Shown: positions 1 to 18,462, counted from the stretch's first letter. The stretch: DNA of 18,462 nt from Paramoeba atlantica (GCA_977017575.1 CDRNVI010000126.1:1-18462); one strand, 5' to 3'. The notes: generated from the letters alone by a model not told the origin. Program-made: numbers and translations.

Positions 1-42
1 TTATTTCTTAATAAATCAACTTTTTTTCTCTTTTCTTTCTTT

Positions 43-1233
43 TTATATTATAGAAGATAAATACACTTTTCTAACATAACTCATTTTTACACCACAAACA
101 CCATACCGCATAATTAAAATAAACTGATTATAACTTAAAGGAGAATTTATATTACTTGGTGAAATAGCACCAAATTGTTTAATAAACTTTTTATTTCTTA
201 ACTTTTTTTTATATCTCCCTGCATAACCTATTTTAAAACCTATAATACCTCTTTCATTTTTTAATTTATTATGTAATAAATAAGCATAATGCTCTATTTT
301 ATAACCTACACGCAATCTTCATAAAATTAGCTTATATAAAGAATAAGTAGAATAATTTACTTCTTTTTTATCTATAAAATTAATTATAGGATTATTAACT
401 TTAAAAATTTTTTTTATAAAAAACGATAAAAAATTTTTTAATATAAAAATAAATTTTTTATCTAAAGTTAAATAATTAGTATTTTTAATATATTTTAATC
501 TATTTAATCAACGATTAGTTGGAATTCTTAATAAATTAAATCATTTATATTTAAAAATAAAATTGTTTAATCTTTTATTATTTTTATAAATATAAATATT
601 TTTATATTTATAAAAATATTTAAAATTATTAAAATTATTTATTGATTTTTTTTTTCATATATTTTTAAATATTTTCTTTCTATAAAACCCTCTACAAGAC
701 TTATTATAAAATAAATAATATTTATTATTATGCATGTCTCAAAAAAAATAATTAAATCAAACATATTTTTTATTTTTATAAAAATTTTTTCTTTTACTAT
801 AAAAAAATTTACGTAAAAAATTTAATATATATTTTTTTTTTTTTTTTTCTTTTAAAAAATTATATTTTTTTTTTCTTTTTGACTGTTTATACTTTAAAAA
901 AGATTTAAATATATATTTTTTTGACTGATTATAATATTTTTTTAATTTATATTTTTTTGACTTAATATCATTAATTAAAAATTTATTATCATCATTTAAT
1001 AAATTTAAATTTATTATCATCATTTTATATGTTTTAATTATATTTAACGGTAATATTTCTAAATTTAACTTGTTTCAATTAATTATAACTTTAATTCAAT
1101 TATAAAATTTAATAATATTATAATCTTCTAAAAAAAATAATTTATAATTTTTTTTTGTAATATTATTTCAAGACGAAATTCAATATTTACTTTTTGATAA
1201 TCTATATGTTATTGGATTAACTAAATGTCCCAT
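43..1233 (-). CDS. rps3: Ribosomal protein S3 (396 aa under code 4)
   Basis: Translated by hand as one open frame from ATG 1233 to TAA 43 with TGA=Trp. N-terminus MGHLVNPITYRLSKSKYWISSW matches the S3 start motif. C-terminal GFKIGYAGR...RYGVCGVK matches the S3_C domain. Joins supplied ORFs 43..315, 757..1023 and the end of 1180..1398. Confidence 0.9.
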
Positions 1234-1235
1234 AA

Positions 1236-1515
1236 TTATTTTTTCTTTTTCTTTATAACGTTTCTTTTTCTTTTTATCTTTTATTAATATATTTTTTGAA
1301 AAAAAAAAATAATTAATCATATAATTAACCATACTATCTATAATTTTAATTGGAATAAAATAACGACCATTATATACAGTTAATCTTTTATTAATCATAT
1401 AATTTTTTATTTTAAAACCTTTTACTTTTAACTTTAATCAAATAAATTTATCTATTTTTGAAAAATTTAAAAAATAAATAATATTTTTAATATTTTTAAT
1501 ATTATTTAAATTCAT
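1236..1515 (-). CDS. rps19: Ribosomal protein S19 (as sequenced it reads in frame into rps3)
   Basis: ATG 1515, then ...KFIW(TGA)LKLK...MINKRLTVYNGRYFIPIKIIDSMVNY, matching the S19 motif W...VHNG..PV.I...MVG. Lies between rpl2 and rps3. The expected TAA (1238-1236) is one base out of frame. Confidence 0.85.
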
Positions 1516-2244
1516 TTTTTTTTTTTTTCTTAGTTGTAGGTACAAATTTTAATACACGTCTTGTAAAATTTGGACAATCGACTCATGGAGAAGTTTTACC
1601 TCTACCACCACCATTAGGGTGATCTACACAATTTTTTGCTACACCTCTAACTGTTGATTTTTTACCTAATCTTATATTAACACCCGCTTTACCTTTTTTT
1701 ATTAAATTATGCCCTCTATTTGATACAATACCTATCATAGCTTTATTATATTTAAAAATTAATTTTTCTAAACCAGAAGGAAATCTTATTAAATAATAAT
1801 TTTCATTTATTTGTGATATTAATAAACAAAAAGAACCTGCAGATCTAGCTACTTTACTTCCTTTTTTTTTTTTTAATTCCATACAAGATATAAAAGAACC
1901 AAATTTTATATTTACTAAAGGATATGTAGAACCAACAATTTTATCTACTGAATTTAAAACCATACCTTCTTTCAAACCTTCGGCTGCTAAAATATAAGAT
2001 AAAAATCCATTTTTATAACATATTAAAGCTATATTTGCAGATCATTAGGATCATACTCAATTCTTAATACCATTGCAGGTATATCAACGTAAGTTCTAAA
2101 AAAATCAATTAATCTATATTTCTTTTTAACTCTAGTTCCCTTTGATTTAACTGTTTTATGACCCATATTATTAACTCCTGCATAATTTTTTAAACCAAAT
2201 GTTAAATATTTTATTGTTTTTGACTGTTTTTTCCTTTTTAACAT
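1502..2244 (-). CDS. rpl2: Ribosomal protein L2, with one apparent 1-nt deletion at 2043/2044
   Basis: KYRLIDF, RIEYDPN, ARSAGS, VRGVAKNCVDHPNGGGRGK motifs. Adding one base restores DPN-RSANIALI. Reads through TGA 1585-1583 to TAA 1504-1502. Confidence 0.9.
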
Positions 2245-2247
2245 ATA

Positions 2248-2667
2248 TTATTTTTTTCTTTTAAATCTAATATTAGTATAATTTGCTTCTATTAATCTAT
2301 ACATATCATTTTTTTTTTTTATAGATAAACCTTTATTATTATATACATCTATTAATTCATTTTGAATACGTTCTTGAAATTTTCGCTCAGTTCTAGAATT
2401 AATAGATCTAACTATTAATTTAACAGAATATGGTATAGAATCTTTTGATTTTAAAATATGTGGTATTAATAATTTTTTACCTCCTACTTTTTTAATATAA
2501 CAAAACATTCTAATGAATATATTAGTTTCTATTTGTTTAAAAAAAGTATTTAAACAACCATATATTTTTTTTATATTAATAAAAATTTTCTCTAAACTTA
2601 ATATAATTCGTTGTTTTTTTCCTTTTCTTATTAATAATTGTATTAAATATTTTATTCAATTATTCAT
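2248..2667 (-). CDS. rps7: Ribosomal protein S7 (139 aa under code 4)
   Basis: ATG 2667, MNNW(TGA)IKYLIQLLIRKGKKQ, then ERIQNELIDVYNNKGLSIKKKNDMYRLIEAN, the S7 signature. Frame checked continuous with supplied ORF 2248..2508. Confidence 0.9.
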
Positions 2668-3070
2668 CTTTTAAAATCTTTCCTTCCTTCTTTTTTTTTT
2701 TCAAACCATATTTAGAACGACTTTTATTTCGTTCTTCACGTTCTCAATTACTAAAATCATATTTTCCTTTTATCAATTTATAACGTACACCTGGAATATC
2801 TCTAGCACGTCCTCCTCTAATCATAACAACTGAATATTTTTGTAAATTATGACCTTGACCTGGTATAACTGCTATTAATTTTTTACCTGTTGATAACCTT
2901 ATTTTTGCTACTTTTCTTTTAGCGGAATTTGGTTTCTTTGGACTAACACTATTTCTAATTTCAATACAAACACCTCTTTTTTGTGGACAAGAATCTAACA
3001 AAAGAACTTTTGTACGTCTTTTTTTTTTTACTCTGCCTTTATTTCTTATTAATTGATTTAACGAAGCCAT
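2660..3070 (-). CDS. rps12: Ribosomal protein S12 (136 aa under code 4)
   Basis: [39 protein letters not shown]. Continues past TGA 2746-2744 with [10 protein letters not shown] to TAA 2662-2660, overlapping the rps7 start by 8 nt. Confidence 0.95.
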
Positions 3071-3438
3071 AATTTATATTTAAATATTATTAACGTATTA
3101 ATAATTTTTTTTTCATAATTGAATTTCATTAATTCATTAAATAAATAATACTTTTTATTTAAATTTAATAACAAACTATTATTTATTTGTTCTAAAGTTC
3201 CTTTACTATATAATTTATTTTTATATCATAAAAATAATAATTCATCATTATTTAAAAGATTAGTAAAATAATCTTTAAAATATTTCTTATTAATAATTAG
3301 AAAATATTTAATATTAACAAAAATTTTATATAATAAATTAATATTAGATAAATTCATTATGTTTAAATAAATTTGTTCAAAATTATTAAACGATTTATAT
3401 TGATTTACATAAAAAAAAGCTATAATATTATTATTCAT
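3058..3438 (-). CDS. 126-aa ORF between rpl11 and rps12, probably a divergent ribosomal protein L10
   Basis: Open from ATG 3438 to TAA 3060-3058 under code 4. Position matches the bacterial rpl11-(rpl1)-rpl10...rps12 order. Sequence resemblance to L10 is only weak. Confidence 0.5.
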
Positions 3439-3444
3439 ATTTTT

Positions 3445-3900
3445 TTATATAATTTTATTAATTTGTAAATTTGATATAGAAAAAAAACTATTTTTAAATC
3501 GCAATTTTATTCAATTTTGATTTAAATTATTATATAATTTAAATCAATAATAATTACGCAATATAACAATATCATATAGACTTCTTAATGTAATTGAATT
3601 TTCCATAATATTTTTATTAGTTAAACTCATAATATTTCAAACCAATTTTAATAAAGTACTAAAAGAAGGTCCTTTTATTAAAAAAACAAATGATTTATCA
3701 GTATATAAAAATAATCTAACATATATTAATAAATCTTCCGATCTATATATAAAAGTTTGTTTATTAAATTCATTACAAAATTCTTTGATTTTCTCTCTAT
3801 TCATATAAGGACTTAAATTAGGTCCTATATTTAAATTTTCAAAAGCGGCACCTCTAGAATTAATTCTTAAATTAAAAAATCGATTTAATTTTTTTTGCAT
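3445..3900 (-). CDS. rpl11: Ribosomal protein L11 (151 aa under code 4)
   Basis: IGPNLSP, KEFCNEFNKQT, YTDKSFVFLIKGPSFSTLLK and ITLRSLYDI match L11 motifs. Open through three TGA codons to TAA 3447-3445. Confidence 0.85.
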
Positions 3901-3933
3901 ATATATAATATTTAATATTATATTAATATTTGA

Positions 3934-5118
3934 TTAACGATCAACCTCCCCAAAAACTATATCTAAAGTACCTATAATAGTAACAACGTCGGCTATCATA
4001 TGTCCTTTTGATAATGTATCTAATAATTGTAAATGATTAAACCCTGGTGCTTTTATCTTACATCTTACCGGTCTATTTAATCCTCCCGAAACTAAAAAAA
4101 CACCAAATTCCCCTTTAGGAGCTTCTATAGATCTATAAACATCATTAAAAGGTATATTAACACCTTCTGTAAATAATTTAAAATGATGTATTAAAGATTC
4201 CATAGAAAACTTCATTAATGATCTTGAAGGTATAGTTAATTTATTATTGTAATTTGAAATAGGACCTTCTTTTAAATTATTTAAAAGTTGTAAAATTATT
4301 TTTAAACTCTCATGCATTTCTTTTAATCTAATTAAAAATCTATCAAAACAATCACCTTTATTTCCTATATAAGATTTAAAATCAACTTCATTATATAATT
4401 CATAAGGTTCACTTTTTCTAATATCTCAAGGAATACCAGATCCTCTTAAAATAACTCCACTACAACCTCAAGTTTGTGCTTGATTATAATCTAATATACC
4501 TACATCAACTAAACGTTGCTTTCATATTCTATTTCTATTTAATAATTCTTCCATTTCCATTAAAGAGTTAATAAAATTTTGTGTAAATTTATATAAATCA
4601 TCACAAAAAGACATAGGTATATCTTGACTAATACCTCCTGGTCTTATATATGCTGCATGCATTCTAGCACCTGATACCCTTTCGTAAAATTCCATTAATT
4701 TTTCACGTTCTTCAAAAAGTCATAAAAAAGGTGTCATCGCTCCAACATCTAACGCATGTGTAGTTAACCCTAAAATATGATTTAATATTCTAGTTATTTC
4801 ACCAAAAATCATACGTATCATCTTTGCTCTTATAGGTACATTAGTAGAACTTAAAGTTTCTACAGCTAATGAATAACAATGTTCTTGAGCCATCATAGAT
4901 ACATAATCTAATCTATCAAAATAAGGTAAAGCTTGTATAAAAGTCTTATATTCTATTAATTTTTCAGTACCTCTATGTAATAATCCTATATGAGGATCAG
5001 CTCTTTCTATAATTTCACCATTTAATTCTAATATTAATCTTAAAACTCCATGAGCTGCTGGATGCTGTGGTCCAAAATTAATTGTAAAAGTTTTTATTTT
5101 TTTAAATATTTTATTCAC
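3934..5118 (-). CDS. nad7: NADH dehydrogenase subunit 7 (49 kDa, NuoD), 394 aa, GTG start
   Basis: [64 protein letters not shown]. Hand translation is continuous with four TGA codons (TPFLW, NRIWKQR, TWGCSG, GIPWD). Confidence 0.97.
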
Positions 5119-5122
5119 GTTT

Positions 5123-5713
5123 TTAAAGTATATATTTTTTATTTAATAAAGGATTAGTAAAACTATATGATCTCATATTTTGCATTAATTCAATAGGCTC
5201 ATAAATCAAATATTGTTTATCTTCATCATACCTTATTTCTAAATAACCATTTAAAGGAAAATCTTTACGAAACGGATAACCTTCAAAACCATAATCGGTT
5301 AATATACGTCTTAAATCTTTATGACCCATGAAAAAAATACCATACATATCTCAAACTTCACGTTCTAACCAATCGGCACCTAAATAAATATCAGTAATAG
5401 ATCTTATAACATCTAATTTATCACAAGATACAGAAATAATTAATCTAGAATTATAATCTATACTTAATAAATTATAATCAATTTCAAAACGTTTAGCTCT
5501 ATCAATAAAATCACTACAGCAAATATCAGTTATTACCTTATATCTTAAAAAAGTATGCTTATTAAAAATATTTAAAACAAAACCTAAATAATCTTTTGAT
5601 ACTAATTTAATTTTAATAAATTCATCTGTTATTTTTATATGCGAAATATATTTAATTAGTAAATTTAATATATAATTTACAGCATAATTATTACTATTTT
5701 TTTTTAATAACAT
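5123..5713 (-). CDS. nad9: NADH dehydrogenase subunit 9 (30 kDa, NuoC), 196 aa
   Basis: [19 protein letters not shown](TGA)[31 protein letters not shown]. Joins supplied ORFs 5351..5713 and 5123..5347. Confidence 0.96.
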
Positions 5714-5725
5714 ATTTTTTTTTAT

Positions 5726-6049
5726 TTATAATATATATAATTTATATTTTTTAATATTACTAATTTTATATTTTAAAAATAGATTAAAAGGTGAAGTAAC
5801 AAAATATAATTGATTTAATCGTATATTTTTATACCTATAATATAATAAAAAACTTTCCATATTTAAATATTGTTTTTTATTAAAATTTATAATTAATCCT
5901 TTAATATTACGTATATATACATTCTTATATAATCAATAAAAATACTTTAATTCAATAGATATATTATTATTTAATTTTTTTTTATATTCTATAGATAATA
6001 AACTTAAAAAAGAATTATCTAAATAATTTATAATTTTTTTCTTTTTCAT
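5726..6049 (-). CDS. Unassigned 107-aa basic ORF
   Basis: ATG 6049 to TAA 5728-5726 with one TGA (Trp). Fills the space between rps11 and nad9 almost exactly. No motif recognised. Confidence 0.55.
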
Positions 6050-6052
6050 TTA

Positions 6053-6634
6053 TTATTTTCTTCTTCTCTTTTTCTTTCTTATACCATTATGAGCTTTTGA
6101 TTTTATAAAATTAATAAATTTTAAATTATAAGGTGTAGTCTCAAATAATTCTTTTAAATTTCTCAAAATTTTACGAGTATAATATTTATAAATTATATTT
6201 AATATGAATCATTTTTTCATATATAAATATTTAAAATCAATTTTTGAAGCTACAATTAATGAATTTAAAGCAAAATATGTTTTTTTTAATGATTTTTTAT
6301 AATAAAAACCACATGAAAAATTTTTTATTACATTACCATTAATATGCGAAAAATTTAAATAAGTATTTTTTCTAAATTTTAATATTAAATTAATAGTACA
6401 AAATTTCAAAGATAACCAATCTAATTTTGAACCCTTTAAAAAATTTTTTAGTATATTAATAAATAAATATCTTTTTTTAAAAAAAGATAATTTTGCTGCA
6501 TATATATACTTGCTTTTTAATTTTATATTAAACCTTTTTTTATATAATCAAGTAACTGAAGGTAATTTAAATCTATTAATTTTTATTAATTTAATTTTTC
6601 TATTTTTTATTAAACTTTCTTTTTTTTCAAACAT
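6053..6634 (-). CDS. rps11: Ribosomal protein S11 with Lys-rich N-terminal extension; start uncertain
   Basis: C-terminal KSKAHNGIRKKKRRR matches the S11 PHNGCRP.K.RR motif. Also RKNTYLNFSHINGNVIKNFSCG. Open from ATG 6634 to TAA 6055-6053 under code 4. Confidence 0.8.
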
Positions 6635-6751
6635 ATTTGTATTATTTCTTTCCTTAATTTTTCTATTTTTTTAAACTTTTTCTATTTTTTTAATTTTCTT
6701 TCTTTTTCTTTTTAATGATTCCATATATAATTAAATTTAATATAAGTTTTA

Positions 6752-6824
6752 TGTGGAGAATTGGGTTTGAACCAATGACCTAAAGCTTTTCAGGCTTTCG
6801 CTCTACCTACTGAGCTACCCCCAA
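6752..6824 (-). tRNA. trnF: tRNA-Phe(GAA)
   Basis: Cloverleaf folded by hand. Anticodon arm AAAGC-CTGAAAA-GCTTT. U1xC72 mismatch. Confidence 0.95.
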
Positions 6825-6857
6825 AAACTTTTTTTAATTACAAATTATTTTTTTATA

Positions 6858-6946
6858 AGGTAAGTATGGGATTCGAACCCATGATATTATATGAATAATA
6901 TATCGATTTAGCAGATCGACACCTTCAACCACTCGGTCAACTCACC
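6858..6946 (-). tRNA. trnS: tRNA-Ser(GCU)
   Basis: Anticodon arm TCGAT-CTGCTAA-ATCGA, long variable arm, fully paired acceptor stem. Confidence 0.93.
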
Positions 6947-6950
6947 TAAA

Positions 6951-7068
6951 ATATGATTTGTATTAATATAAATTATACACTCTTATAAAAAATTTTTACG
7001 AGAATATAATTTAATATATAATATTTTAAAGGGGTTCGATAAGCTTACCTTTAAAAAAATATAAATTT
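6951..7068 (-). ncRNA. Candidate divergent mitochondrial 5S rRNA
   Basis: About 120-nt spacer holding two hairpins: TTTTAAAGG-loop ending CGAAC(C)-CCTTTAAAA, like domain beta and loop C, and ATTATA...TATAAT with an internal loop, like domain gamma. Helix I could not be assigned with confidence. Confidence 0.5.
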
Positions 7069-8602
7069 ATTTTCCATCCAGCGGCAGGTTCCCCTACCAC
7101 TACCATGTTACGACTTCACCCTGATTACTATCAATACATTCAAATTAAATAATTAATAATATTTTATTAAAAATTAATTATCTCCAATAGATTAAAAATA
7201 ATTAATAAATATAAATTATTAATTATAATTTTTCCAATATTAACAACTTTCTTGGCGTGACGGGCAGTGTGTACTAGATTTGGATCCCATTTCACCGAAA
7301 CATTCTAATTTTCGATTACTGACGATTTCAACTTCATATTTTTATTTTCAAAAAATAATCCGAACTATAATAATCTTTATAATTTAAATAAATTTCACAA
7401 TTTATTTTTTTTTTGTAATTATTTTTGTAACACGTGTGTAGCCCAATTCATCAGGGCCATACCTACTTGACGTCCTCCTCTATTTCATTTAATATATAAT
7501 TAATAATACAATATAATAAAATATAATAATATAACATATAATAATATAACATATAATAATATAATAATATATCATATATTTTATTATATTGTAAGGATTA
7601 CACTCGTTACAGGACCTAACCATACATATCACTACACGAGCTGACGACAGCCATGCGACACCTGCTTAAAAAAATTATATAAAGTTTACTATATTTATTA
7701 TAATTTTTTTCAATCTAGAATTGGTAAGATTTTATGCGTTATATCAGATTAAACCACATGTTCCACCGTTCGTACCAAATCTCAGCCACTTTCTTTGAGT
7801 TCAAATCTTGCGATCATACTCCCCAGGCGGGATGCTTACGCGTTAGCTAAACCACAAAAATATTTCCTACAGTTAGCATCCATCGTTGTCTGTATGGACT
7901 ACAAGGGTCTCTAATCCTCTTTGATACCCATACCTTCGTACTTTAGTGTCAGTATAAATCTAATATATAGCTTTCACCTTCTGATAGTCTCCATAGTATC
8001 ATAAAATTTCACCTTTCCTCTATGAATACTATATATCTGAATAATACTCTTAGTTTACTAATATATAATTTATTCATTATTACTAATAACGCCTTTAAAA
8101 TTATATTATTAAAAAATAAACCACTTATCATACGCTTTACGCCCAGTAATGCTGAGTAACACCCGCATCCTCCGTATCACCGCGACTGCTGGCACGAAGT
8201 TAGTCGATGCTTATTCTTAAGTTTAACCTCATTATGCTCACTTAAACAAGAATTTTTCAATAAATTGTCATAATTCAGGTAGTTTCGCTGAATCAAGCTT
8301 TCGCTCATTGTTCAATATTCCTCACTGCTGCCTCCTAATGGAACTTGGGCCTTTTCTCATTCCCAATGTGGTTGTACCTCCTTCTAAGATCAACTAAGAA
8401 TTATCGGCTTGTTAGTCTATTACACCTCCAACTACCTAAATCTTTATAAACCAGTTTATAATATAAACATAATTATAAGTCCCGTTTTTATATATTACTC
8501 ACCCTTACGCCATTAATTTTAAATTTTAAATTTTAATTGACTAGCATGTGTTAAGCGAACTACTAGCATTTACTCAAAGCCAGAATAAAACATACAAGTA
8601 TT
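7069..8602 (-). rRNA. rns: Mitochondrial small-subunit rRNA (ends approximate)
   Basis: Minus strand has TTCTGGCT...AACACATGCTAGTC near the 5' end, GTGCCAGCAGTCGCGGT (530 loop), TAGTACACACTGCCCGTCA and AAGTCGTAACATGGTA near the 3' end. Confidence 0.97.
7521..7565. repeat. 15-bp tandem repeat x3 (ATATAATAATATAAC) inside rns
   Basis: Two exact copies at 7521-7535 and 7536-7550, and a third with one mismatch at 7551-7565. Confidence 0.8.
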
Positions 8603-8663
8603 TATATATAATATATTATATATTATATAATTTACATAAATTTTTTCCTTTTTTTTTATATTA

Positions 8664-8752
8664 AGATTATGGTGGGATTCGAACCCACGGTATAATTAAA
8701 ATTATACGATCCTTTTCAAGAGGATTACTTTAAACCACTCAGCCACATAAAC
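8664..8752 (-). tRNA. trnS: tRNA-Ser(UGA)
   Basis: Anticodon arm ATCCT-CTTGAAA-AGGAT, long variable arm. U2xU71 mismatch. Confidence 0.93.
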
Positions 8753-8766
8753 TTATTTTTATACAA

Positions 8767-8839
8767 CGACCTGGGCAGGATTCGAACCTACATCTGATTG
8801 GTTAACAGCCAATTATTTTACCATTGAAACTACCAAGTA
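8767..8839 (-). tRNA. trnN: tRNA-Asn(GUU)
   Basis: Anticodon arm ATTGG-CTGTTAA-CCAAT. U1xC72 mismatch. Confidence 0.94.
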
Positions 8840-8971
8840 TTGTTTTACAAATTACAAACTTTAATTTAAAGTTTGTTGTTTTATTACATATAATATTTTC
8901 AAAATATTATATATTTTATTTTTTCTTATATAGAAATTTTTTTTCTTTTTTCTTTTTTCTTTTTATAAATT

Positions 8972-10709
8972 AGATTGATTCTTAAAATTATTTAGCTCAA
9001 TCCTTCACAGGACTTACACACATAACTTAATTTCGTAATAATCTTTTACAATCAATACTTTTAAAATATTTTAGGATAATCTTCTTATATCTGATTGAAT
9101 TCAATAATTATATTATTAATATTTAGCTACTCGACTATGCAATTATAATTACAACCGATTTACCAGTGATATTCCTTCTCCAGTCCTTTCGTACTAAGAT
9201 AAGATTCCTTCAATTTTAATTAATTAATAGTAGATAGGAACCGAACTGTCTCACGACGTTCTGAACCCAATTCAGGTGCCACTTTAAAAGGCGAACAGCC
9301 TTACCCTTGGAACATTTTTCTTAACCAGGATGTGACCAATCGACATCGAGGTGCCAAACAACCCCGTCGATATCTTCTCTCCGGAGTCATAAGCCTGTTA
9401 TCCCTAGCGTACCTTTTATCCGTTGAGCAATATATTTTCCATTCAATTATATTGGATCACTATGACCGACCTTTTTAATAAAAAAGATCTCTGTTTGATT
9501 TGTAAATCTCACAGTTAAGTAATTTTTAGCCATTACACGCCAAAATTTTCTAATAAAATTTTAATTACCTTTGTACACCTCAGTTACATTTTATGAGGTC
9601 TCCGCCCCAGAGAAACTACCAAATATATTCTGTCAATAAAAAATTATTAAGTTTTAAAAATTAAATTCAAACTATTCCAAGATTATCTAAACAATTAACT
9701 AATATTAAAATTTTAAAACGATTAGTTTGTATCCTATAAATTTAATTTTTAATAACAAAATATAACTGCAGTAAAGGTGCATAGGGTCTTTCCGTCTAGC
9801 TATTAATACGCTGCATCTGCACAGAGAATTCAATTTCGCTAATATAATACCGGAGACAGTAGGATAGTCGTTACACCATTCATGCAAGGTCGAAACTTAC
9901 TCGACAAGGAATTTCGCTACCTTCGAACCGTTATATTTACAGCTGCCGTTTACTATTCATTCTATATAAAGCTAATACATTAAATAATATATTAACAATA
10001 ACAATTACCTTTATAGCACCGGGCAGGTGTCAGACCTTATACATCATTAATTAATTTTGCAAAGTCCTGTGTTTTTGTTAAACAGTCGCCATCCTCTATT
10101 CTGTTACATTTTTATATACATATAATGTATATATAAAAATACTCTTTCTCCCGAAGTTACAGAGTTAATTTGCCGAGTTCCTTCGATATTATTCAATTAT
10201 TCATCTTAGTATTCTCTACTAATCCTCCTGTGTAGGATTTAGTACGGTTTTATATATTAGTATTCTTTCTTGAATTTATTTTTTAAATATTTCAATCAAT
10301 ATATTCGAATATATCACACAATGTTTTACTATATTTATTAAAATTTGATCCTAAAATATTTAAAAAATAAACTGTCATCTACTAATAACGTTAAAAATAT
10401 TATGTTATCCTTATAACTCTTTAACTACCCTTCAATTATTACTATCATATTCATTTTAGGGACCGATTAACCTAATGCAGTTTATCTTGACATTAGAAAC
10501 CTTAGATTTTTAGATGATAATGTTTATAACATTATTTTTGCTACTTATGCCAGTATATTCAATTTTAATTTTATAATTTAACAATTTTTTTTTTCTTTTA
10601 TAAAACGTTCTACTACCAATATTATTATTTTAAATAATATTTTATAATTTCGGTATAATATTTATTTTCGTTATATTTTTGTATATAAATATCTATCAAT
10701 AGTGAGCTG

Positions 10710-10743
<34 letters not shown>

Positions 10744-11740
10744 CTACCTCCTATTCATTGTTAATATTATAATATACTTTTTAACTTAATATTAATTTAG
10801 AAACCTTAATTTATAATCTGGGCTCTTTCCCTCTTGATATACAACCTTTTCGCCATATATCGAAATTAAAATTTTTACTTTAATTTATTTGAAGTTCATA
10901 TGGATTCAACAACCCAATATGGTAGCTCTACCTTATATAAATTTAAATTTCATCTCTACTTAAATAGATTTCGTAGAAAACCAGCTATCTCCAAGTTTGA
11001 TTAGCCTTTCACCCCTAATCATAGGTCATCCCAATATATTGCAACATAAACGGGTTCGATCCTCCATTAATATTTAATTAACTTCAATCTGCCCATGACT
11101 AGATCACTTGGTTTCGGGTCTAATTATTATAACTATAAATATATTAATTACAATTAAAAAATTTAATAATTTTTTATTTTGCTACAATAATTAACTCACT
11201 GACCCATTATGCAAAAGGTACCTTTTAACATATAATTATTTATGCTTAAAGTGCTATTTAGTATTAAATTTCAAAATCTATTTCAACATTTTTAAAAAAT
11301 TTCTTTTCATCTTTCCTTCACAGTACTTTTTCACTATCGCTCAATAATAATTCTTTAGCCTTTAGAGATGGTACTCTAATCTTCAAACAAATTTAGTTTT
11401 TATTTTACTCAAAACCAATAATAATAATAAAAAATAACAAGACTATTACTTATTTTGTTAATTATTCCAAATTATTATATTTTTTATTTATATTATTGTT
11501 TAATTTAGCTATTTTATTTTCGCTCGCCACTACTAATAATATCATTTTTATTTTTTTTAACTAATTACTAAGATGATTCAATTCATTAGATATTCTTTAA
11601 TTATTTAATTTAATTGGGTTTTCCCTTTAGATACGTGAATATTGAAAAATTATTATTATTTTACTTTCACATTACGTTTTAAAACGTCTATAAACTTATT
11701 ATTGGCAAGATATCCGTTTAATACTATTTTAAATTTATAA
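8972..11740 (-). rRNA. rnl: Mitochondrial large-subunit rRNA (ends approximate, no intron evident)
   Basis: The plus strand shows complements of conserved 23S blocks: ccgaactgtctcacgacgttctgaaccca, cgacatcgaggtgccaaac, cctgttatccctagcgtacc, gacaaggaatttcgctacctt, accagctatctccaagtttgattagcctttcaccc. Length of about 2.77 kb leaves no room for an intron. Confidence 0.97.
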
Positions 11741-11799
11741 AAAAATTTTAAAATGATTTGTTTAAAAATTATTCAACATTATTATATATTTTAATCAAA

Positions 11800-11880
11800 T
11801 GGAAGTGGTAGGATTCGAACCTACGATGTATAAATACAATAGATTTACAGTCTACCGCTTTACCGCTCAGCCACACTATA
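11800..11880 (-). tRNA. trnY: tRNA-Tyr(GUA)
   Basis: Anticodon arm GTAGA-CTGTAAA-TCTAT. Acceptor TATAGTG/CACTTCC is mismatched at positions 1-3. Confidence 0.94.
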
Positions 11881-11888
11881 AAAAATTA

Positions 11889-11962
11889 TAATTGGTATAG
11901 GACTCGAACCTATATCTAATGATTTAGAAGATCATAATTTTAACCAATTAAACTAACCAATT
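11889..11962 (-). tRNA. trnR: tRNA-Arg(UCU)
   Basis: Anticodon arm ATGAT-CTTCTAA-ATCAT. Acceptor AATTGGT/ACCAATT fully paired. Confidence 0.94.
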
Positions 11963-11989
11963 AAATACAAAACAACAAAAATAGGTTGA

Positions 11990-12229
11990 TTAAGTATATA
12001 AGATTAAGAAAGCCATCATTAGGGCAAACAGAGCAATTGCTTCTGTTAATGCGAAACCTAATAAAGTATAACCAAATAAATCGTTTTTAATTGTAGTATT
12101 ACGTGAATAAGCAATTAAAAAAGCTCCAAAAACTATTCCTATACCTACTCCAGCACCTGCTAAACCTATAGTAGCTAAACCAGCACCTACTTTTTTTGCA
12201 AAAATTAACATAATTTCTTGTCCTGCCAT
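11990..12229 (-). CDS. atp9: ATP synthase subunit c (subunit 9)
   Basis: [21 protein letters not shown] and [21 protein letters not shown] with the catalytic Glu. Confidence 0.97.
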
Positions 12230-12328
12230 TTTCGAAAATATTTTTATACATATATTTTACTAATTAATAAAAATTCAAAATTGATTACATATTCAAATGT
12301 AATCCATAATAATATTTACGTAATTATA

Positions 12329-12401
12329 TAAGAAGAGTAGGACTCGAACCTACATCTGTGGCTCATGAGACCACTGAGTTAACCTATTACTCCATCTTAA
12401 A
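12329..12401 (-). tRNA. trnM: tRNA-Met(CAU), possibly initiator
   Basis: Anticodon arm GTGGT-CTCATGA-GCCAC. A11:U24 pair as in initiator tRNAs. Acceptor TTTAAGA/TCTTCTT is mismatched at positions 1-3. Confidence 0.9.
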
Positions 12402-12419
12402 AAATAATTAACTCATCGT

Positions 12420-12502
12420 TATTGGAGGAGGGACTCGAACCCTCAAGCCTAAAAGGCAATAGATTTTAAGTCTATCATGTTTACCAATTCCATCACACCA
12501 TT
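12420..12502 (-). tRNA. trnL: tRNA-Leu(UAA)
   Basis: Anticodon arm ATAGA-CTTAAAA-TCTAT, long variable arm. Mismatches A2xA71 and U6xU67. Confidence 0.92.
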
Positions 12503-12511
12503 AAAAAATAA

Positions 12512-12652
12512 TTAATAAAAATTTTTTGTATATGAAAATAAAAATATTATCTCTTATACAAACCCCCCAAACCCCCCTTATTATATGTGACAAATAATAT
12601 ACTTAAATCAGTGTATAATAGATTTCAAAAATTTACAAAAAAATTTTATTAA
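12512..12652. repeat. 19-bp inverted repeat (18/19 match) enclosing a tandem (AAACCCCCC)2 tract
   Basis: Arms at 12512-12530 and 12634-12652. C6 tracts at 12563-12568 and 12572-12577. Confidence 0.65.
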
Positions 12653-12678
12653 ATTAAATTAATACGGATAAAATAATT

Positions 12679-12750
12679 TCATTTCTAAGGGATTTGAACC
12701 CTTATTTCTGCTGTGAAAGAGCAATGTCCTAACCATTAGACGAAGAAAAA
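12679..12750 (-). tRNA. trnE: tRNA-Glu(UUC)
   Basis: Anticodon arm TTGCT-CTTTCAC-AGCAG. U2xU71 mismatch and U1:G72 wobble. Confidence 0.93.
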
Positions 12751-13055
12751 TAAATCATATATTATTAAAGTAAGATATATCTAAAATAAATAATCATATT
12801 AATTTACTAATTTTTTATTTTATTAAAAAAATAAAATCTTTTTAAATTACTATAATTATTTATTTTATAATTTTTTTCTCTTTTTAAAAAAATTTTAAAG
12901 TAAAATATGTATGTTTTATGACTGTTATTTCATATGGTAAATGTACATTTTATCATAAATTGATATAATAGATATAATAGATAATATTTTATATTTTATA
13001 TACAAAACATCTTGATTATATAGTAATAAAATAAACATATTTTATTATATTTTTA

Positions 13056-13129
13056 TGCGGAGGAAGGGATTCGAACCCTCATCTTTTAACTCGACAGGTT
13101 AAAGCTTTAGCCTATTAAGCTACCTCCTT
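13056..13129 (-). tRNA. trnD: tRNA-Asp(GUC)
   Basis: Anticodon arm TTAAC-CTGTCGA-GTTAA. Acceptor AAGGAGG/CCTCCGC is mismatched at 1 and 2. Confidence 0.94.
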
Positions 13130-13142
13130 GTTATTATAATTA

Positions 13143-13213
13143 TCAGGACGATAGGATTTGAACCTATAACGTCTACACCCAAAATAGATATTTTACCTTT
13201 AAACTACATCCTT
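13143..13213 (-). tRNA. trnP: tRNA-Pro(UGG)
   Basis: Anticodon loop TTTGGGT. A1xG72 mismatch. Confidence 0.93.
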
Positions 13214-13247
13214 ATAAAAAATATTTTTTCTTTTTTTATACATACAA

Positions 13248-13321
13248 TACAGATGAGGGGACTCGAACCCCTAAAATTTAGTGCCTAAAACTAATATGTC
13301 TACCAATTCCATCACATCTAT
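13248..13321 (-). tRNA. trnL: tRNA-Leu(UAG), short variable loop
   Basis: Anticodon arm TTAGT-TTTAGGC-ACTAA. D-arm resembles trnL(UAA). Variable region is only ATTTT. Confidence 0.88.
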
Positions 13322-13387
13322 CTTTACAAATTAATAAAAAAATTTTAATAAAATATATATTTTATTAATTTTATTATTCTTAATTTA

Positions 13388-13460
13388 GGTAAGAAATGAG
13401 ACTTGAACTCATACTATCGAAATCACAACTCGATGTGCTAACCTATTACACCATTCCATA
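13388..13460 (-). tRNA. trnH: tRNA-His(GUG)
   Basis: Anticodon loop TTGTGAT, C73. Acceptor TATGGAA/TTCTTAC is mismatched at 1-3. Genomic -1 base is A, not G. Confidence 0.93.
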
Positions 13461-13466
13461 TTTTTA

Positions 13467-13539
13467 TAGATAGTATAGGGCTCGAACCTATAACCCTCAG
13501 CTTAAAAGGCCGATGCTCTACCAATTGAGCTAACTATTT
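13467..13539 (-). tRNA. trnK: tRNA-Lys(UUU)
   Basis: Anticodon arm TCGGC-CTTTTAA-GCTGA. A2xC71 mismatch. Confidence 0.95.
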
Positions 13540-13548
13540 TTTTATTTA

Positions 13549-13621
13549 TAACCCCAGATAGACTCGAACTATCAATTTGCACTTATCAAATGCATGTTTT
13601 AACCAATTAAACTATAGGTAT
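13549..13621 (-). tRNA. trnI: tRNA-Ile(GAU)
   Basis: Anticodon arm TGCAT-TTGATAA-GTGCA. Mismatches U2xU71 and A3xG70. Confidence 0.93.
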
Positions 13622-13648
13622 TTATTATATTTATATTAAATTTAAAAA

Positions 13649-13720
13649 AGTTAGGAACGGACTCGAACCGATATCTATAGATTTGCAATCAATTATAATA
13701 ACCATTTATACTATCCTTAA
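13649..13720 (-). tRNA. trnC: tRNA-Cys(GCA)
   Basis: Anticodon loop TTGCAAA, U73. The T-stem 3' side appears to lack one base (CCGT for CCGAT). In that register positions 1 and 3 are mismatched. Confidence 0.85.
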
Positions 13721-13734
13721 AAAAAATTTTTAAT

Positions 13735-13805
13735 ACTTAGGAGTAGGACTCGAACCTACACGATTTGCTGCCAAAAAACAATACTTACCTTTCAGTCACC
13801 CTATT
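13735..13805 (-). tRNA. trnQ: tRNA-Gln(UUG)
   Basis: Anticodon arm TTGTT-TTTTGGC-AGCAA. Acceptor AATAGGG/TCCTAAG is mismatched at 1 and 2. Confidence 0.92.
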
Positions 13806-13837
13806 TTATTATATTTAATTATATCATCTATAATTAA

Positions 13838-13909
13838 CACAGTTGATAGGATTTGAACCTATGTCATTAGTTTTGAAGACTAATATGTTAACCACTACAC
13901 TACAACTAT
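13838..13909 (-). tRNA. trnW: tRNA-Trp(UCA), UGA-decoding
   Basis: Anticodon arm TTAGT-CTTCAAA-ACTAA, G73, acceptor ATAGTTG/CAACTGT. No long arm, so it is not tRNA-Sec. Confidence 0.94.
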
Positions 13910-13912
13910 TTA

Positions 13913-14392
13913 TCCATCTTTATTGGTGAGCAAGCTGTTACTCAGGGCTTAGCCGATAACATCAACACATTCGATAACTTGCTTGCTGGATTTCAACAGC
14001 AAACTTCTCAACCCATTTATTCATACTCACAGGAGACATCTACTATGACTGAGAAAACATCTGAAAATACTGTATCAATCGATGCAGCAAATTTACTAGA
14101 AAAAGGCAAAGTGCAAGAACACGCTCGCATCCAAGCTATCTTAACCTGTAGGGCAGCTGAGCATCGAGAAAAGTTAGCACAACACCTGGCATTTGCGACC
14201 AACATGGATGTCGAGCTTGCAAAACAAACGTTAGCGTCTGCACCGACATCATCATCGCAAACAACCGATACCACTGGCTTTCAAGCGGCAATGAATAAAC
14301 TTGATAACCCTGACATTGTGCCAAGCAGTGCATCGGATAATGAAGAGAGTGAAGAGATTGACTCGGTTGTTAAACGTATCGCGAGTTATTAA
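13913..14392 (+). CDS. C-terminal part of phage S49 head-maturation protease/scaffold (lambda gpC/Nu3-like), 5' truncated at the junction
   Basis: Frame upstream of the supplied ORF reads SIFIGEQAVTQGLADNINTFDNLL, the end of an S49 domain. EHARIQAILTC...EKLAQHLAFATNMDVELAKQTLASAP resembles the scaffold domain. Confidence 0.85.
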   Translation, partial: SIFIGEQAVTQGLADNINTFDNLLAGFQQQTSQPIYSYSQETSTMTEKTSENTVSIDAANLLEKGKVQEHARIQAILTCRAAEHREKLAQHLAFATNMDVELAKQTLASAPTSSSQTTDTTGFQAAMNKLDNPDIVPSSASDNEESEEIDSVVKRIASY

Positions 14393-14492
14393 TGGCACTT
14401 TGGATAATCGCATTTCTATTAATTAAGCGGAGGAAACCAACATGAGCGCAAAAGGCTTTACTGACCAGGGGTCAATTACCCCCGATAATTTA

Positions 14493-15056
14493 TAGTCCTC
14501 TAAATGGTTAAAACCCCCGTCTTCCAGACGGGAAAATCTTCAGATCTTGTTGTATGATGTGGGCATGGGCAACTATACGCACAGTCACCATACGGGTCTA
14601 CCACCATCGATACCACATTGTTTGGGTAACGAAGTATCGTTATAAAGTTTTGCAAGGTGAGCTACGTCTTCGCGTTCGTGCTCTTGTAGCGCAAGTAGCT
14701 GAGGAAATGGGGGTTGAAATACTCAATGGAGTATTGTCAACAGAGCACATCCATCTTTTTGTTAGTATTCCACCGCATATTTCAGTAAGTGATTTTGTTA
14801 AAAAGGCAAAGGGTCGTTCATCGCGCAAAATCCAGCAAGAGTTTCCTAGTATTCGCAAACGCTATTGGGGCAGGCATTTTTGGGGTCGTGGGATATTTTA
14901 GTAGCACAAGTGGCAATGTAACAGATGATATCATTATGCTTACATTGATAATCATGTTGATGCTCATAAAGTGGATTATGAATCGAATATGTCTTTAGAC
15001 TGATACCGGCTTCAGCCTAGATCTCCAACCCACCAACTTCTAGTTGGTGTGGTTGA
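14493..15056 (+). mobile_element. IS200/IS605-family insertion sequence (tnpA only), about 564 bp
   Basis: Left hairpin CCCGTC-TTCCA-GACGGG and right hairpin CACCAACT-TCT-AGTTGGTG. No terminal inverted repeats or target duplication. Excision restores the decoration gene frame. Confidence 0.9.
14565..15003 (+). CDS. tnpA: Y1 (HUH) transposase TnpA with three apparent 1-nt indels
   Basis: YHHRYHIVWVTKYRYKVL, HUH motif EHIHLFV, KGRSSRKIQQEFP, FWGRGYFSSTSGNVTDDIIMAYID after correcting indels near 14594, 14891 and 14937. Stop TGA 15001-15003. Confidence 0.9.
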
Positions 15057-15393
15057 GTTGCAGGGGAATTCCCTTGCGTACAACGTACAGAGACTATCAC
15101 TGGCGGTATGAAGTTACCCCGTGGTGCGGTGTTAGGCCGCATCAACGACTCGGGCCTTTTTACATTAAGTAAATTACGTGCCGGTGATGGCTCCCAACTC
15201 CCCGTCGCCATCTTGGCTGAAGACTGTGATGCCACCAGCGATACCCAAGCGGTGGTCTATCACGCAGGAGAATTCAATGCCAAAGCCTTAACCTATGGTG
15301 AGGGTCATACAGTTAAGTCGGTATGGGAGGCTCGACGCGCGGCAGCAGGTAACAACACCTTATTTCTACGTAATAATCAAGAGGCTTAACCCT

Positions 15394-16323
15394 ATGGATA
15401 TCTTTTCCACCTTTGTTTAAATCGCACGATTGAATGTTTAGCGCGTTCATCATCATTTTTGTAGATACTTTCTTTACTTCTGTGCAAATGGAAGAAAGTG
15501 CGGAAATTCATTTTTGATATTAATGATCTAAGCCACGGCTAGCGCCCTTCGTCTCTCCACTGGTAGCCGGTAAGTCGTTGATGCACAAGGCTACAGCACC
15601 CAAAGTTTTAGACCCGCTATGTGAAAGATAAACGCCGCTTTGATGCCAATACACCGCTTAAACGTGTGATTGGAGAGACCATCGGTGGCAGTCTTCCGGC
15701 TAACCGACGGTTAGAAGCCGCTATTAGCAAAGCATTGCGTGACCAATTAGAAAACTTAACCCGTCGTGAAGAAGTGATGGCAGCCGAAGTGTTAACCAAA
15801 GGCACCGTCACCGTATCTGGCGACAATTACCCAACGCAAGTGGTTGACTTCAAACGTGACCCGAAGCTCACCATTAAACTCTCAGGCAATAATGATAAGT
15901 GGAGCAATCCAGAATCGCCTGCACTTGACCAGTTAGAAGATTGGGCCAGCTTGATTCAAGAAAAATCCGGAGCCGTGGCGCGACGTGTTATCCTTGACCC
16001 TAAAGCCTGGCGGTTATTACGCAAGAACAAACAAATCATTGCGCAGCTTGATATTCGTCGTGGCACCAATGTGACATTGGATACAGACCCAATGGGTCGT
16101 GGCCAAGGCAATGAAAAGCACGGTATGTTGGCTCTATTGGTGACTTTGATTTCCATGTTTACAATGACGTCTATGTGGATGATGAGAATTCCGTACAACA
16201 TTTGTTACCTGACTATACGGTATTACTGGTCAGCCAACAAAACTTAGAAGGCACACGGTGTTATGGCATGATACGAGATGAAAAAGGCAGACTTTCGGGC
16301 AATGCGTTATTTCAGCAAAAGTT
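15394..16323 (+). pseudogene. Phage major capsid protein E family, multiply frameshifted and truncated by IS66
   Basis: Reconstructed MDIFST...FLLDTFF...APFVSPLVAGKVV...FRPAYVKDKRRFD, LTRREEVMAAEVL, VVDFKRD, and ...AMRYFSKS(W) cut at 16323. Confidence 0.85.
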
Positions 16324-16520
16324 GTATGCTTCCAGTAACGTTGCGTGACGATGTTGCATTTACCAATTATTCTGTGTAGGGCAATTTGTTTTTAACATTT
16401 TGCCTGTTGCAATTTTTCTTCTATGTAATTTATCTGCCCTTGCAATTTGCATTAATGGGATCAGACTTGCCTCTAGGTTAAGTTATGGTGACTGACCGAT
16501 GTAAGCAACAGGGATTATTT

Positions 16521-18151
16521 ATGAAGAAACCAGAAACGATCGATTTAAGTCATGCGGAGGCAGAGTCGTTACTGTCACGACTTGAAACTGGCGACTATCA
16601 GAGAGTGATCGGAAAGTATGTAGCAGTGCATTGCGCATGGTATTTGGCTGCAAGGCCAATTAATCGAAGCAAGCTGAGTATCCGACGATGAAGAGGTTAT
16701 TCGGAATACGTAGCGAAAAAAAGGGTTAACGGGTACATCGACGTCATCCAGCGCTTGTGACAAAGAGCCAAAGCAAACTGACACTGTTAAGGAAACAGAT
16801 GTCCCCAAGGAGAAAAACAAAGGGCATGGGCGTCATGGAGCGGATGATTATGTTGCTGCAGAGGTTATCAAAGTGACAGATGAACGTTACTACTTCAGGG
16901 GCACCCTGCCTGCATATTGATTGCCAAGGTCGTTTGTATTTATGGAATAAACCATCAAAGGTGATCCGTTTGTTAGGTCAAACCGATGGCGCGCGTTGTG
17001 CGTTATGACCGAGAAGTCTATCGTTGCGGATTGTGTTTAACCTTATTTACCGTGCCATTACCCAAAGAGTGTGGCAAAGCGGTCTATAGCGATAGTTTCA
17101 AAGCGGTATTAGCGGTGAACCATTATGTTTTTGGTTTGCCCTTTTATCGCATAGCGAAGTACCACGAAGCGCAAGGTATTCCTCTGCCAAACATCGAATC
17201 AATTTGCGTGTATGGAAGAGATATTTAATCAGGTACTACCGGTTATCAAGCCTTACAACCGTTGCGGCTAATGGTGAGTTGATTCAATTTGATGACACAA
17301 CAGCGAAGGTACAAAGTTTATTATTAGAGAACCAGCAACTAGATGAGAAAGCGCGCCGTGGCATATTTACCACAGCGTCGATATCAAACGTCGGCGACAA
17401 TAAAAGTGGTCCTGGTTTTCACAGGACGCTCGCATGCTGGAGAGAATATCACAGCACTGCTTGAGAAACGTGATGCTCAATTAACAGATGTTATTTTAAT
17501 GTCAGATGCACTGAGTCGAAACCGCATTAAAGAAGAAGCCATCGCTGAGCAGACTCACGTCAGCTATTGCTTGGCCCATGCCAGACGCTATTTTTTCGAG
17601 TGTAAAGACGTTTATCCCAAGGTGTGTCAACCGGTGTTAGAGTGGATTGGCCAGGTGTATCAACACGAGCGTCATTGTAAAGCTAATGGCTATACACCAG
17701 AGCAACGTCTGCATTATCATCGCCGTCACTCCAAGCCAGTGATGAAACGGTTGCGCCGATTTTGGATAAGTGCATTAGAAAACGCTGGGCAGAACCTAAC
17801 AGTAGTGGTGGTAAAGCCATCAACTATATGCGCAAACATTTTCAACCGCTAACGTTATTTTTATCGGTACCCGGGGCCATTATAGACAATAACGACACGG
17901 AACGTTTAATTAAGATTGCGCCGGTAATGTACCGTAAGAATTCGCAACAATATCGTACAACGTATGGTGCCATGATTGGCGATGCATTAATGAGCCTATT
18001 ATTCACGGCACAATATGCCGGTGTTGACCCGGTGGATTATTTGCAAAGCATGTTGTTATATAAAGACGAATTAGGGGATTGTGCTACGGATTGGTTGCCT
18101 TGGTGTTATAAGGAGACCCTCAATACCGAGACATTAGCCAAAGCGGCTTAG
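16521..18151 (+). pseudogene. tnpC: IS66 DDE transposase TnpC, fragmented by many single-base indels
   Basis: Fragments carry YRCGLC, LPFYR, IQFDDT, MSDALSRN, CLAHARRYF, KAINYM, IDNNDTERLIK, SLLFTAQYAGVDPVDYL. Ends TAG 18149-18151. Confidence 0.88.
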
Positions 18152-18462
18152 GCGGCTTTGGCAGGCAGGGGGTTTCCAATGTTGTTGACAATTAGCTGTA
18201 ATGGGGTTGCCGTTGTACAGCAAGATGTTTAGCGTGCTTGCTGTTAGTTGGATCGTGTCATTGTTATCTTGCGGCCACCATTGAAGTCGTCGCTAGAAAG
18301 TCGTTTATGACACAGCCAGAAACCTTGGCCATCGTAAGTGAGCAGTTTGATAGCATTACGACGACGATTAGTAAAAACAAATACCGTGCCATTAAAGGGT
18401 TACTACCCATTTTAGCTTGGCAAAGTCTGCATAAACCTTCGATACCGGCTCTGAAGTCAACT
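18148..18462 (-). pseudogene. tnpB: IS66 accessory protein TnpB, 5' end outside the window, frameshifted
   Basis: Minus strand reconstructs to VDFRAGIEGLCRLC...PFNGTVFVFTNRRRNAIKLLTYDGQGFWLCHKRLSSGRLQWWP, the TnpB_IS66 signature. Three indel corrections needed. Not in the supplied ORF track. Confidence 0.88.

Follow-up and report, generated by a model that had tools for sequence, protein, structure and literature searches.

A gene-level signature of 5' tRNA editing in the mitochondrial genome of a Paramoeba-related amoeba

Editing of transfer RNA (tRNA) at the 5' end is limited to the first three acceptor pairs, where nucleases remove nucleotides and Thg1-like 3'-5' polymerases refill them; Acanthamoeba gave the first example, and Dictyostelium (10 of 18 tRNAs), Polysphondylium, Physarum and chytrid fungi followed (PMC4284800), with the share of edited tRNAs elsewhere ranging from "a few to nearly all" (PMC6471195). 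In Dictyostelium, TLP3 repairs truncated mitochondrial tRNAs in vivo, and TLP2 adds a G at position -1 (G-1) to mitochondrial tRNA-His opposite C73 (PMC5041481, PMC6471195). Here we analyze a stretch of 18,462 nucleotides from the Paramoeba atlantica assembly GCA_977017575.1 (CDRNVI010000126.1:1-18462; hereafter "the window", meaning the whole stretch), in which 18 mitochondrial tRNA genes lie on the minus strand between positions 6752 and 13909, and 14 of them are mismatched within the first three pairs of the acceptor stem. Judging by the genes, 5' tRNA editing of the Acanthamoeba/Dictyostelium type very probably acts on these 14 tRNAs.

Among the described systems, Acanthamoeba castellanii likewise has a one-strand, AT-rich amoebozoan mitogenome with UGA read as tryptophan (Trp), a reassignment that belongs to the Acanthamoeba mitochondrial code. 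The two genomes differ in that cox1 and cox2, which are fused in Acanthamoeba, are separate in the window's mitogenome, and in that an atp1 tree places the window genome near Paramoeba, with no Acanthamoeba-named protein among the close atp1 matches. At the level of the tRNAs the likeness is closer, as Acanthamoeba editing also concerns the first three pairs only, touches most mitochondrial tRNAs and includes transversions (Lonergan & Gray 1993; Price & Gray 1999, via review PMC4284800); because the needed changes include transversions there as well as here, replacement templated by the 3' strand is implied in both. Acanthamoeba editing was seen by RNA sequencing, whereas here it is predicted from genes alone. 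Dictyostelium discoideum shares the same gene-level signature and a tRNA-His with C73 and no encoded G-1 (PMC5041481, PMC6471195), but differs in its share of edited tRNAs (10 of 18, compared with a predicted 14 of 19 in the window's mitogenome) and in that its enzymes have been identified (DdiTLP3 and DdiTLP2) whereas ours is inferred. Chytrid fungi (Spizellomyces punctatus and relatives) also undergo templated repair of the first three pairs only (PMC4284800), although they are an unrelated lineage (Fungi) with another type of mitogenome.

ARAGORN found 17 of the 18 tRNA genes and Rfam the remaining one, for Cys; because ARAGORN at times draws eight-pair or slipped acceptor stems, we set the register from structure, with positions 1-7 being the seven nucleotides that precede a two-nucleotide spacer and the D stem, and the 3' acceptor strand, positions 66-72, being the seven nucleotides after the T stem. 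In this standard register, a script counted 24 pairs that are neither Watson-Crick nor GU at positions 1-3 in 14 of the 18 tRNAs, and one at positions 4-7. The list (F1, S-uga 2, N1, Y1-3, M1-3, L-uaa 2, E2, D1-2, P1, H1-3, K2, I2-3, C1+3, Q1-2) reproduces letter for letter the one that a sequence-only reading of the window had obtained by hand folding, and the repaired starts proposed there for Tyr (GGA), Asp (GCG) and Pro (CAG) are correct. The genes are given below with the encoded 5' letters and those predicted after repair.

6752..6824, minus strand: trnF(gaa); T1:C72 mismatch; predicted 5' TTG to GTG
6858..6946, minus strand: trnS(gct); acceptor stem wholly paired
8664..8752, minus strand: trnS(uga); T2:T71 mismatch; predicted GTT to GAT
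8767..8839, minus strand: trnN(guu); T1:C72 mismatch; predicted TAC to GAC
11800..11880, minus strand: trnY(gua); positions 1-3 all mismatched; predicted TAT to GGA; Rfam model aligns 4-67 only
11889..11962, minus strand: trnR(ucu); wholly paired; mismatched at 1-3 in the close relative L086
12329..12401, minus strand: trnM(cau); positions 1-3 all mismatched; predicted TTT to AAG
12420..12502, minus strand: trnL(uaa); A2:A71 mismatch, predicted AAT to ATT; also T6.T67
12679..12750, minus strand: trnE(uuc); T2:T71 mismatch and T1.G72 wobble; predicted TTT to (C/T)AT
13056..13129, minus strand: trnD(guc); positions 1-2 mismatched; predicted AAG to GCG
13143..13213, minus strand: trnP(ugg); A1:G72 mismatch; predicted AAG to CAG
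13248..13321, minus strand: trnL(uag); paired, with one G.U
13388..13460, minus strand: trnH(gug); positions 1-3 mismatched; predicted TAT to GTA; C73 discriminator, A encoded at -1
13467..13539, minus strand: trnK(uuu); A2:C71 mismatch; predicted AAA to AGA
13549..13621, minus strand: trnI(gau); positions 2-3 mismatched; predicted ATA to AAC
13649..13720, minus strand: trnC(gca); positions 1 and 3 mismatched; predicted TTA to GTT; window copy one T short after 13657
13735..13805, minus strand: trnQ(uug); positions 1-2 mismatched; predicted AAT to CTT; window copy one A short in the D loop
13838..13909, minus strand: trnW(uca); paired; reads UGA/UGG

The boundary after position 3 is sharp. In a full-genome copy of the same mitogenome (L001), which carries 19 tRNA genes, 24 of 57 pairs are mismatched at positions 1-3 versus 1 of 76 at positions 4-7, the sole case there being a T.T pair at 6-67 of tRNA-Leu(uaa), while the anticodon and T stems have one mismatch in 95 pairs each, both in Cys (2/190 in total). 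By Fisher's exact test, positions 1-3 differ from positions 4-7 with p = 8e-10 and from all other stem pairs with p = 1.4e-17. The nineteenth gene, trnM(cau)-2, lies just upstream of trnW and is whole and fully paired in other assemblies. All 18 window tRNAs score at or above the Rfam tRNA gathering score, and the genes are otherwise intact and functional-looking. The Rfam model agrees independently with the mismatch pattern: for Tyr, Met, His and Gln its alignment runs only between about model positions 3-5 and 66-68, so that their ends are dropped. At 14 of 19 tRNAs on the complete circle (74%), the earlier description of a heavily edited case is fair, but it is not exceptional, with published figures of "nearly all" for some species and 10 of 18 for Dictyostelium (PMC4284800, PMC6471195).

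The mismatched bases are present in the DNA itself. Other assemblies were reached by exact look-up of the atp9 product and then by further look-ups, and window positions 1992-13915 differ from ENA ERZ24900291:ctg3923c (39,429 nucleotides) by no substitution and by 12 single-base insertions or deletions (indels) in homopolymers, which is typical of a noisy long-read consensus. A contig from ERZ24894578 agrees likewise with the window over the same interval, one from ERZ26167977 is 100% identical to ERZ24900291:ctg3923c where compared, a Logan contig has the same gene layout, and six public runs from three studies contain 82-85% of the sampled words of the tRNA cluster (11790-13950). Among the indels are those in Cys (about 13657) and in the D loop of Gln (about 13786), and one in rnl (about 10882); the extra T of three other assemblies brings the T stem and the acceptor stem of Cys into register, and Cys, which ARAGORN missed in the window, is found by it in L001. 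As a control, the same script was applied to 437 tRNAs on about 35 other contigs of organelle or bacterial origin, taken from an atp9 scan of Joint Genome Institute (JGI) metagenomes that yielded mostly unrelated mitochondria, and 1289 of 1311 pairs at positions 1-3 were formed (98%), so the script does not create mismatches. One could still suspect noisy long-read errors, pseudogenes in nuclear inserts or wrong folding registers in a window with 12 indels in homopolymers and a chimeric join to bacterial DNA at 13915/13916; yet all acceptor positions are free of indels, the remaining stems are sound, control tRNAs pair almost throughout, and there is no substitution against three independent assemblies, one of them a 39.4-kilobase (kb) contig flagged circular. 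An artefact of this kind is thus barely conceivable. The sequence-only reading had already judged random sequencing error an improbable source and had named accurate reads that remove the mismatches as refuting evidence; this condition fails, as the independent assemblies carry the same bases, with no substitution over 11.9 kb.

Compositionally, the two strands of the acceptor end have parted ways. The guanine-plus-cytosine (GC) content of 5' positions 1-3 is 14%, against 10.9% in the spacers of the cluster and 42% in the 3' partners at 70-72, whereas at positions 4-7 it is symmetrical between the strands (53% and 51%). With 5' letters at spacer GC and stem-like 3' partners, selection therefore holds the 3' letters and not the 5' letters. 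In tRNA-Pro, all six orthologues examined (five of them in related contigs) retain G72 and A73, and 5' position 1 is A or T, never C. Constraint is thus relaxed on the 5' letters only, and the data support a reading of the 3' strand as the conserved template. Alternatively, the 3' half could be rebuilt on the 5' half, as in centipede or snail mitochondria, or bases could be deaminated; both processes are known for mitochondrial tRNAs (PMC4284800, PMC4394434). No tRNA genes overlap here, though, which removes the usual reason for 3' editing, and with the 5' strand as template the GC content of the acceptor ends would be about 14% and G72 of tRNA-Pro would be lost, the decayed strand being the 5' one. 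Of the 24 corrections needed, 21 are transversions, which excludes deamination and calls for replacement of nucleotides. We therefore hold either process to be most improbable, and return to repair of the 5' strand.

Evolutionarily, the same signature extends to relatives. In the eight contigs that are the nearest atp9 relatives (L086, L088, L003, L008, L009, L090, L028 and L004), the mismatches across 71 tRNAs number 49 at position 1, 24 at position 2 and 31 at position 3 (104 together), and there are none at positions 4-7, with a GC content of 23% at positions 1-3 versus 55% at 70-72. Which positions are mismatched varies between orthologues: trnR(ucu), paired here, has all three mismatched in L086, and trnY, with all three mismatched here, has only position 2 mismatched in L088. 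Positions 4-7 stay paired throughout the orthologues despite sequence change, and free drift of the 5' letters predicts this difference between positions 1-3 and 4-7.

The nearest named relative found is Paramoeba pemaquidensis. Searches with rps12 and atp9 matched almost exclusively environmental proteins, and the few named matches (a contaminant contig recorded as Genlisea aurea, Actinophrys sol, red algae and bacterial metagenome-assembled genomes) were uninformative. With the UGA-free first 461 residues as query, atp1 is 80% identical to that of P. pemaquidensis (UniRef A0A1D8D5G1), the other named matches being at about 60%, and a maximum-likelihood atp1 tree places the window protein in a strongly supported 26-member group that includes the Paramoeba clade, outside that clade. 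A 48,196-nucleotide contig (L106; ENA ERZ24894578:ctg2963c), which shares its ENA sample with a copy of the window's mitogenome, encodes the exact P. pemaquidensis atp1, and it shows the signature too: 15 of its 19 tRNAs have mismatches at positions 1-3, and there are none at 4-7. The published P. pemaquidensis mitogenome (KX611830; 48,522 base pairs, 20 tRNAs; PMC5601477) differs from ours in belonging to a separate, well-supported atp1 clade, in its larger size and in its tRNA order. Together with gene content and layout (atp1, nad7/9/11, a block of rps/rpl genes, a single coding strand and tRNA genes in clusters), these comparisons indicate a genome of amoebozoan (Discosea-like) type, related to the Paramoeba clade but outside it. 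A heterolobosean origin was considered and set aside in view of the Paramoeba atp1 match. The suggestion of a possibly unsampled lineage needs tempering: the same mitogenome is already present in several public assemblies, although the nearest named relative, at 80% atp1 identity, does sit in a neighbouring clade. In the searchable part of its text and supplements, the P. pemaquidensis mitogenome paper does not mention tRNA 5' editing, and the searchable supplements have no Thg1 entry (PMC5601477); among the open-access papers found, none takes up 5' editing in Discosea beyond Acanthamoeba.

The boundary after position 3, the intact remaining stems, the decay of the 5' letters while the 3' letters are kept, the transversions and the relatives together support the interpretation as 5' editing that had been proposed from the sequence, and that this is a new example of a known process, not a new mechanism, is well supported. 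Mechanistically, we infer from the pattern a change at the RNA level, an order of steps and a Thg1-like enzyme. Processing of the 5' end would come first, followed by removal of the first one to three nucleotides, whereupon a nucleus-encoded, mitochondrion-targeted Thg1-like 3'-5' polymerase would refill the 5' letters on the template of the 3' acceptor strand. The predicted outcome is a set of fully paired stems, such as those beginning with GGA in Tyr, AAG in Met, GCG in Asp, CAG in Pro and GUA in His. In tRNA-His, which has C73 and whose gene has A at -1, a templated G-1 is probably added as well, and since three mismatches come on top of this, up to four templated additions would be needed.

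Three observations weigh against this account. First, ARAGORN slips His and Cys by one base, with a three-nucleotide spacer, which changes the count for both: in that register, His has mismatches at positions 1 and 4 rather than 1-3. The register counted here for both is the canonical one, with U8 and a two-nucleotide spacer. Second, pairing at positions 1-3 is above random (33 pairs versus 22 expected, p = 0.0006), and some 5' letters are therefore either still constrained or only recently decayed. Third, the T.T pair at 6-67 of tRNA-Leu(uaa), the same in all assemblies, cannot be reached by 5' editing as described, so it must be tolerated, and some mismatches can persist without repair. An alternative is that nothing is repaired and that the tRNAs function although their frayed acceptor stems keep only four to six pairs, much as some animal mitochondrial tRNAs tolerate mismatches; the Leu pair, tolerated in any case, speaks for it. 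Against it, Tyr, Met and His would be left with four pairs only, positions 70-72 keep a stem-like GC content (42-55%) and Pro keeps G72 and A73, which is sensible only if these letters pair with something, and editing has been found in every signature-bearing organism whose RNA was examined (PMC4284800). We thus find function without repair improbable, if less so than rebuilding from the 5' half or deamination, and continue to favor 5' editing. A broader version of 5' editing would be constitutive rather than triggered by mismatches, with the first three 5' nucleotides stripped and remade on every mitochondrial tRNA of this Paramoeba-related group, paired or not. Were this true, the encoded 5' letters could drift without constraint to the composition of spacers, and most paired cases would be chance A-T pairs; we offer it tentatively, as an unlikely extension.

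The genomic setting is that of a mitochondrial circle. Positions 1-13915 of the window are AT-rich mitochondrial DNA (14-32% GC) with all genes on the minus strand, including atp9, nad9, nad7, rpl11, rps12, rps7 and rpl2 in addition to the following features.

7066-8601, minus strand: rns
8961-11740, minus strand: rnl
13910..13915, minus strand: spacer base and last bases of the 19th tRNA gene, trnM(cau)-2, cut by the join to bacterial DNA

Three overlapping sequences (L001, L104 and L107), 100% identical where they overlap, tile a 39.4-kb circle, and one 39.4-kb contig is flagged circular. The whole circle has 19 tRNA genes, of which 18 are in the window, and ARAGORN and Rfam detected no tRNA outside the cox1-to-nad9 cluster across it. 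The complete circle lacks genes for tRNA-Ala, Gly, Thr, Val and Arg(CGN), which suggests that these tRNAs are imported. UGA encodes Trp, as trnW(uca) is present and cox1 of the same genome contains 13 in-frame UGA codons; the three cox genes (cox1, cox2 and cox3) are separate and ordered cox2-cox3-cox1. Inside the tRNA cluster there are two non-coding gaps, 12504-12678 (about 175 nucleotides) and 12751-13055 (about 305 nucleotides), with no tRNA detected in either. Beyond the window, the same mitogenome has a 1159-residue open reading frame (ORF) at L083 16084-19563, with no Pfam match on record, which sits between an atp8-like ORF (MPQLD...) and an rps11-like gene; in the same place L087, a relative, carries an ORF of 849 residues.

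From 13916 onward, the GC content of the window rises to 42-48%, and the sequence contains an IS200 transposase (TnpA), a lambda gpD-like protein, a frameshifted capsid E fragment and pieces of an IS66 transposase. The mitochondrial/bacterial join at 13915/13916 falls inside the tRNA-Met gene and is most likely a chimeric assembly, because the other assemblies of the mitogenome lack it. The capsid piece is 99% identical to a 2.45-megabase metagenome-assembled genome of Gammaproteobacteria (OZ220716.1), which has seven copies of it, and genes of the bacterial part (13916-18462) are also frameshifted; an origin of this part in E. coli or a plasmid was considered and gave no match.

For the biology of these amoebae, an environmental group comprising the 39-kb mitogenome, its metagenomic relatives and the Paramoeba clade would join the organisms whose mitochondrial tRNAs depend on 5' end repair. 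This leaves the understanding of how 5' editing works unchanged. From a practical perspective, annotation tools miss or mis-register such tRNAs, as ARAGORN did with Cys in the window, which it failed to find, and with His, which it placed in a slipped register, and the mismatch table amounts to 24 concrete, checkable predictions for the 5' ends of mature tRNAs. The signature also singles out the amoebae of this group as organisms in which to look for mitochondrial Thg1-like 3'-5' polymerases.

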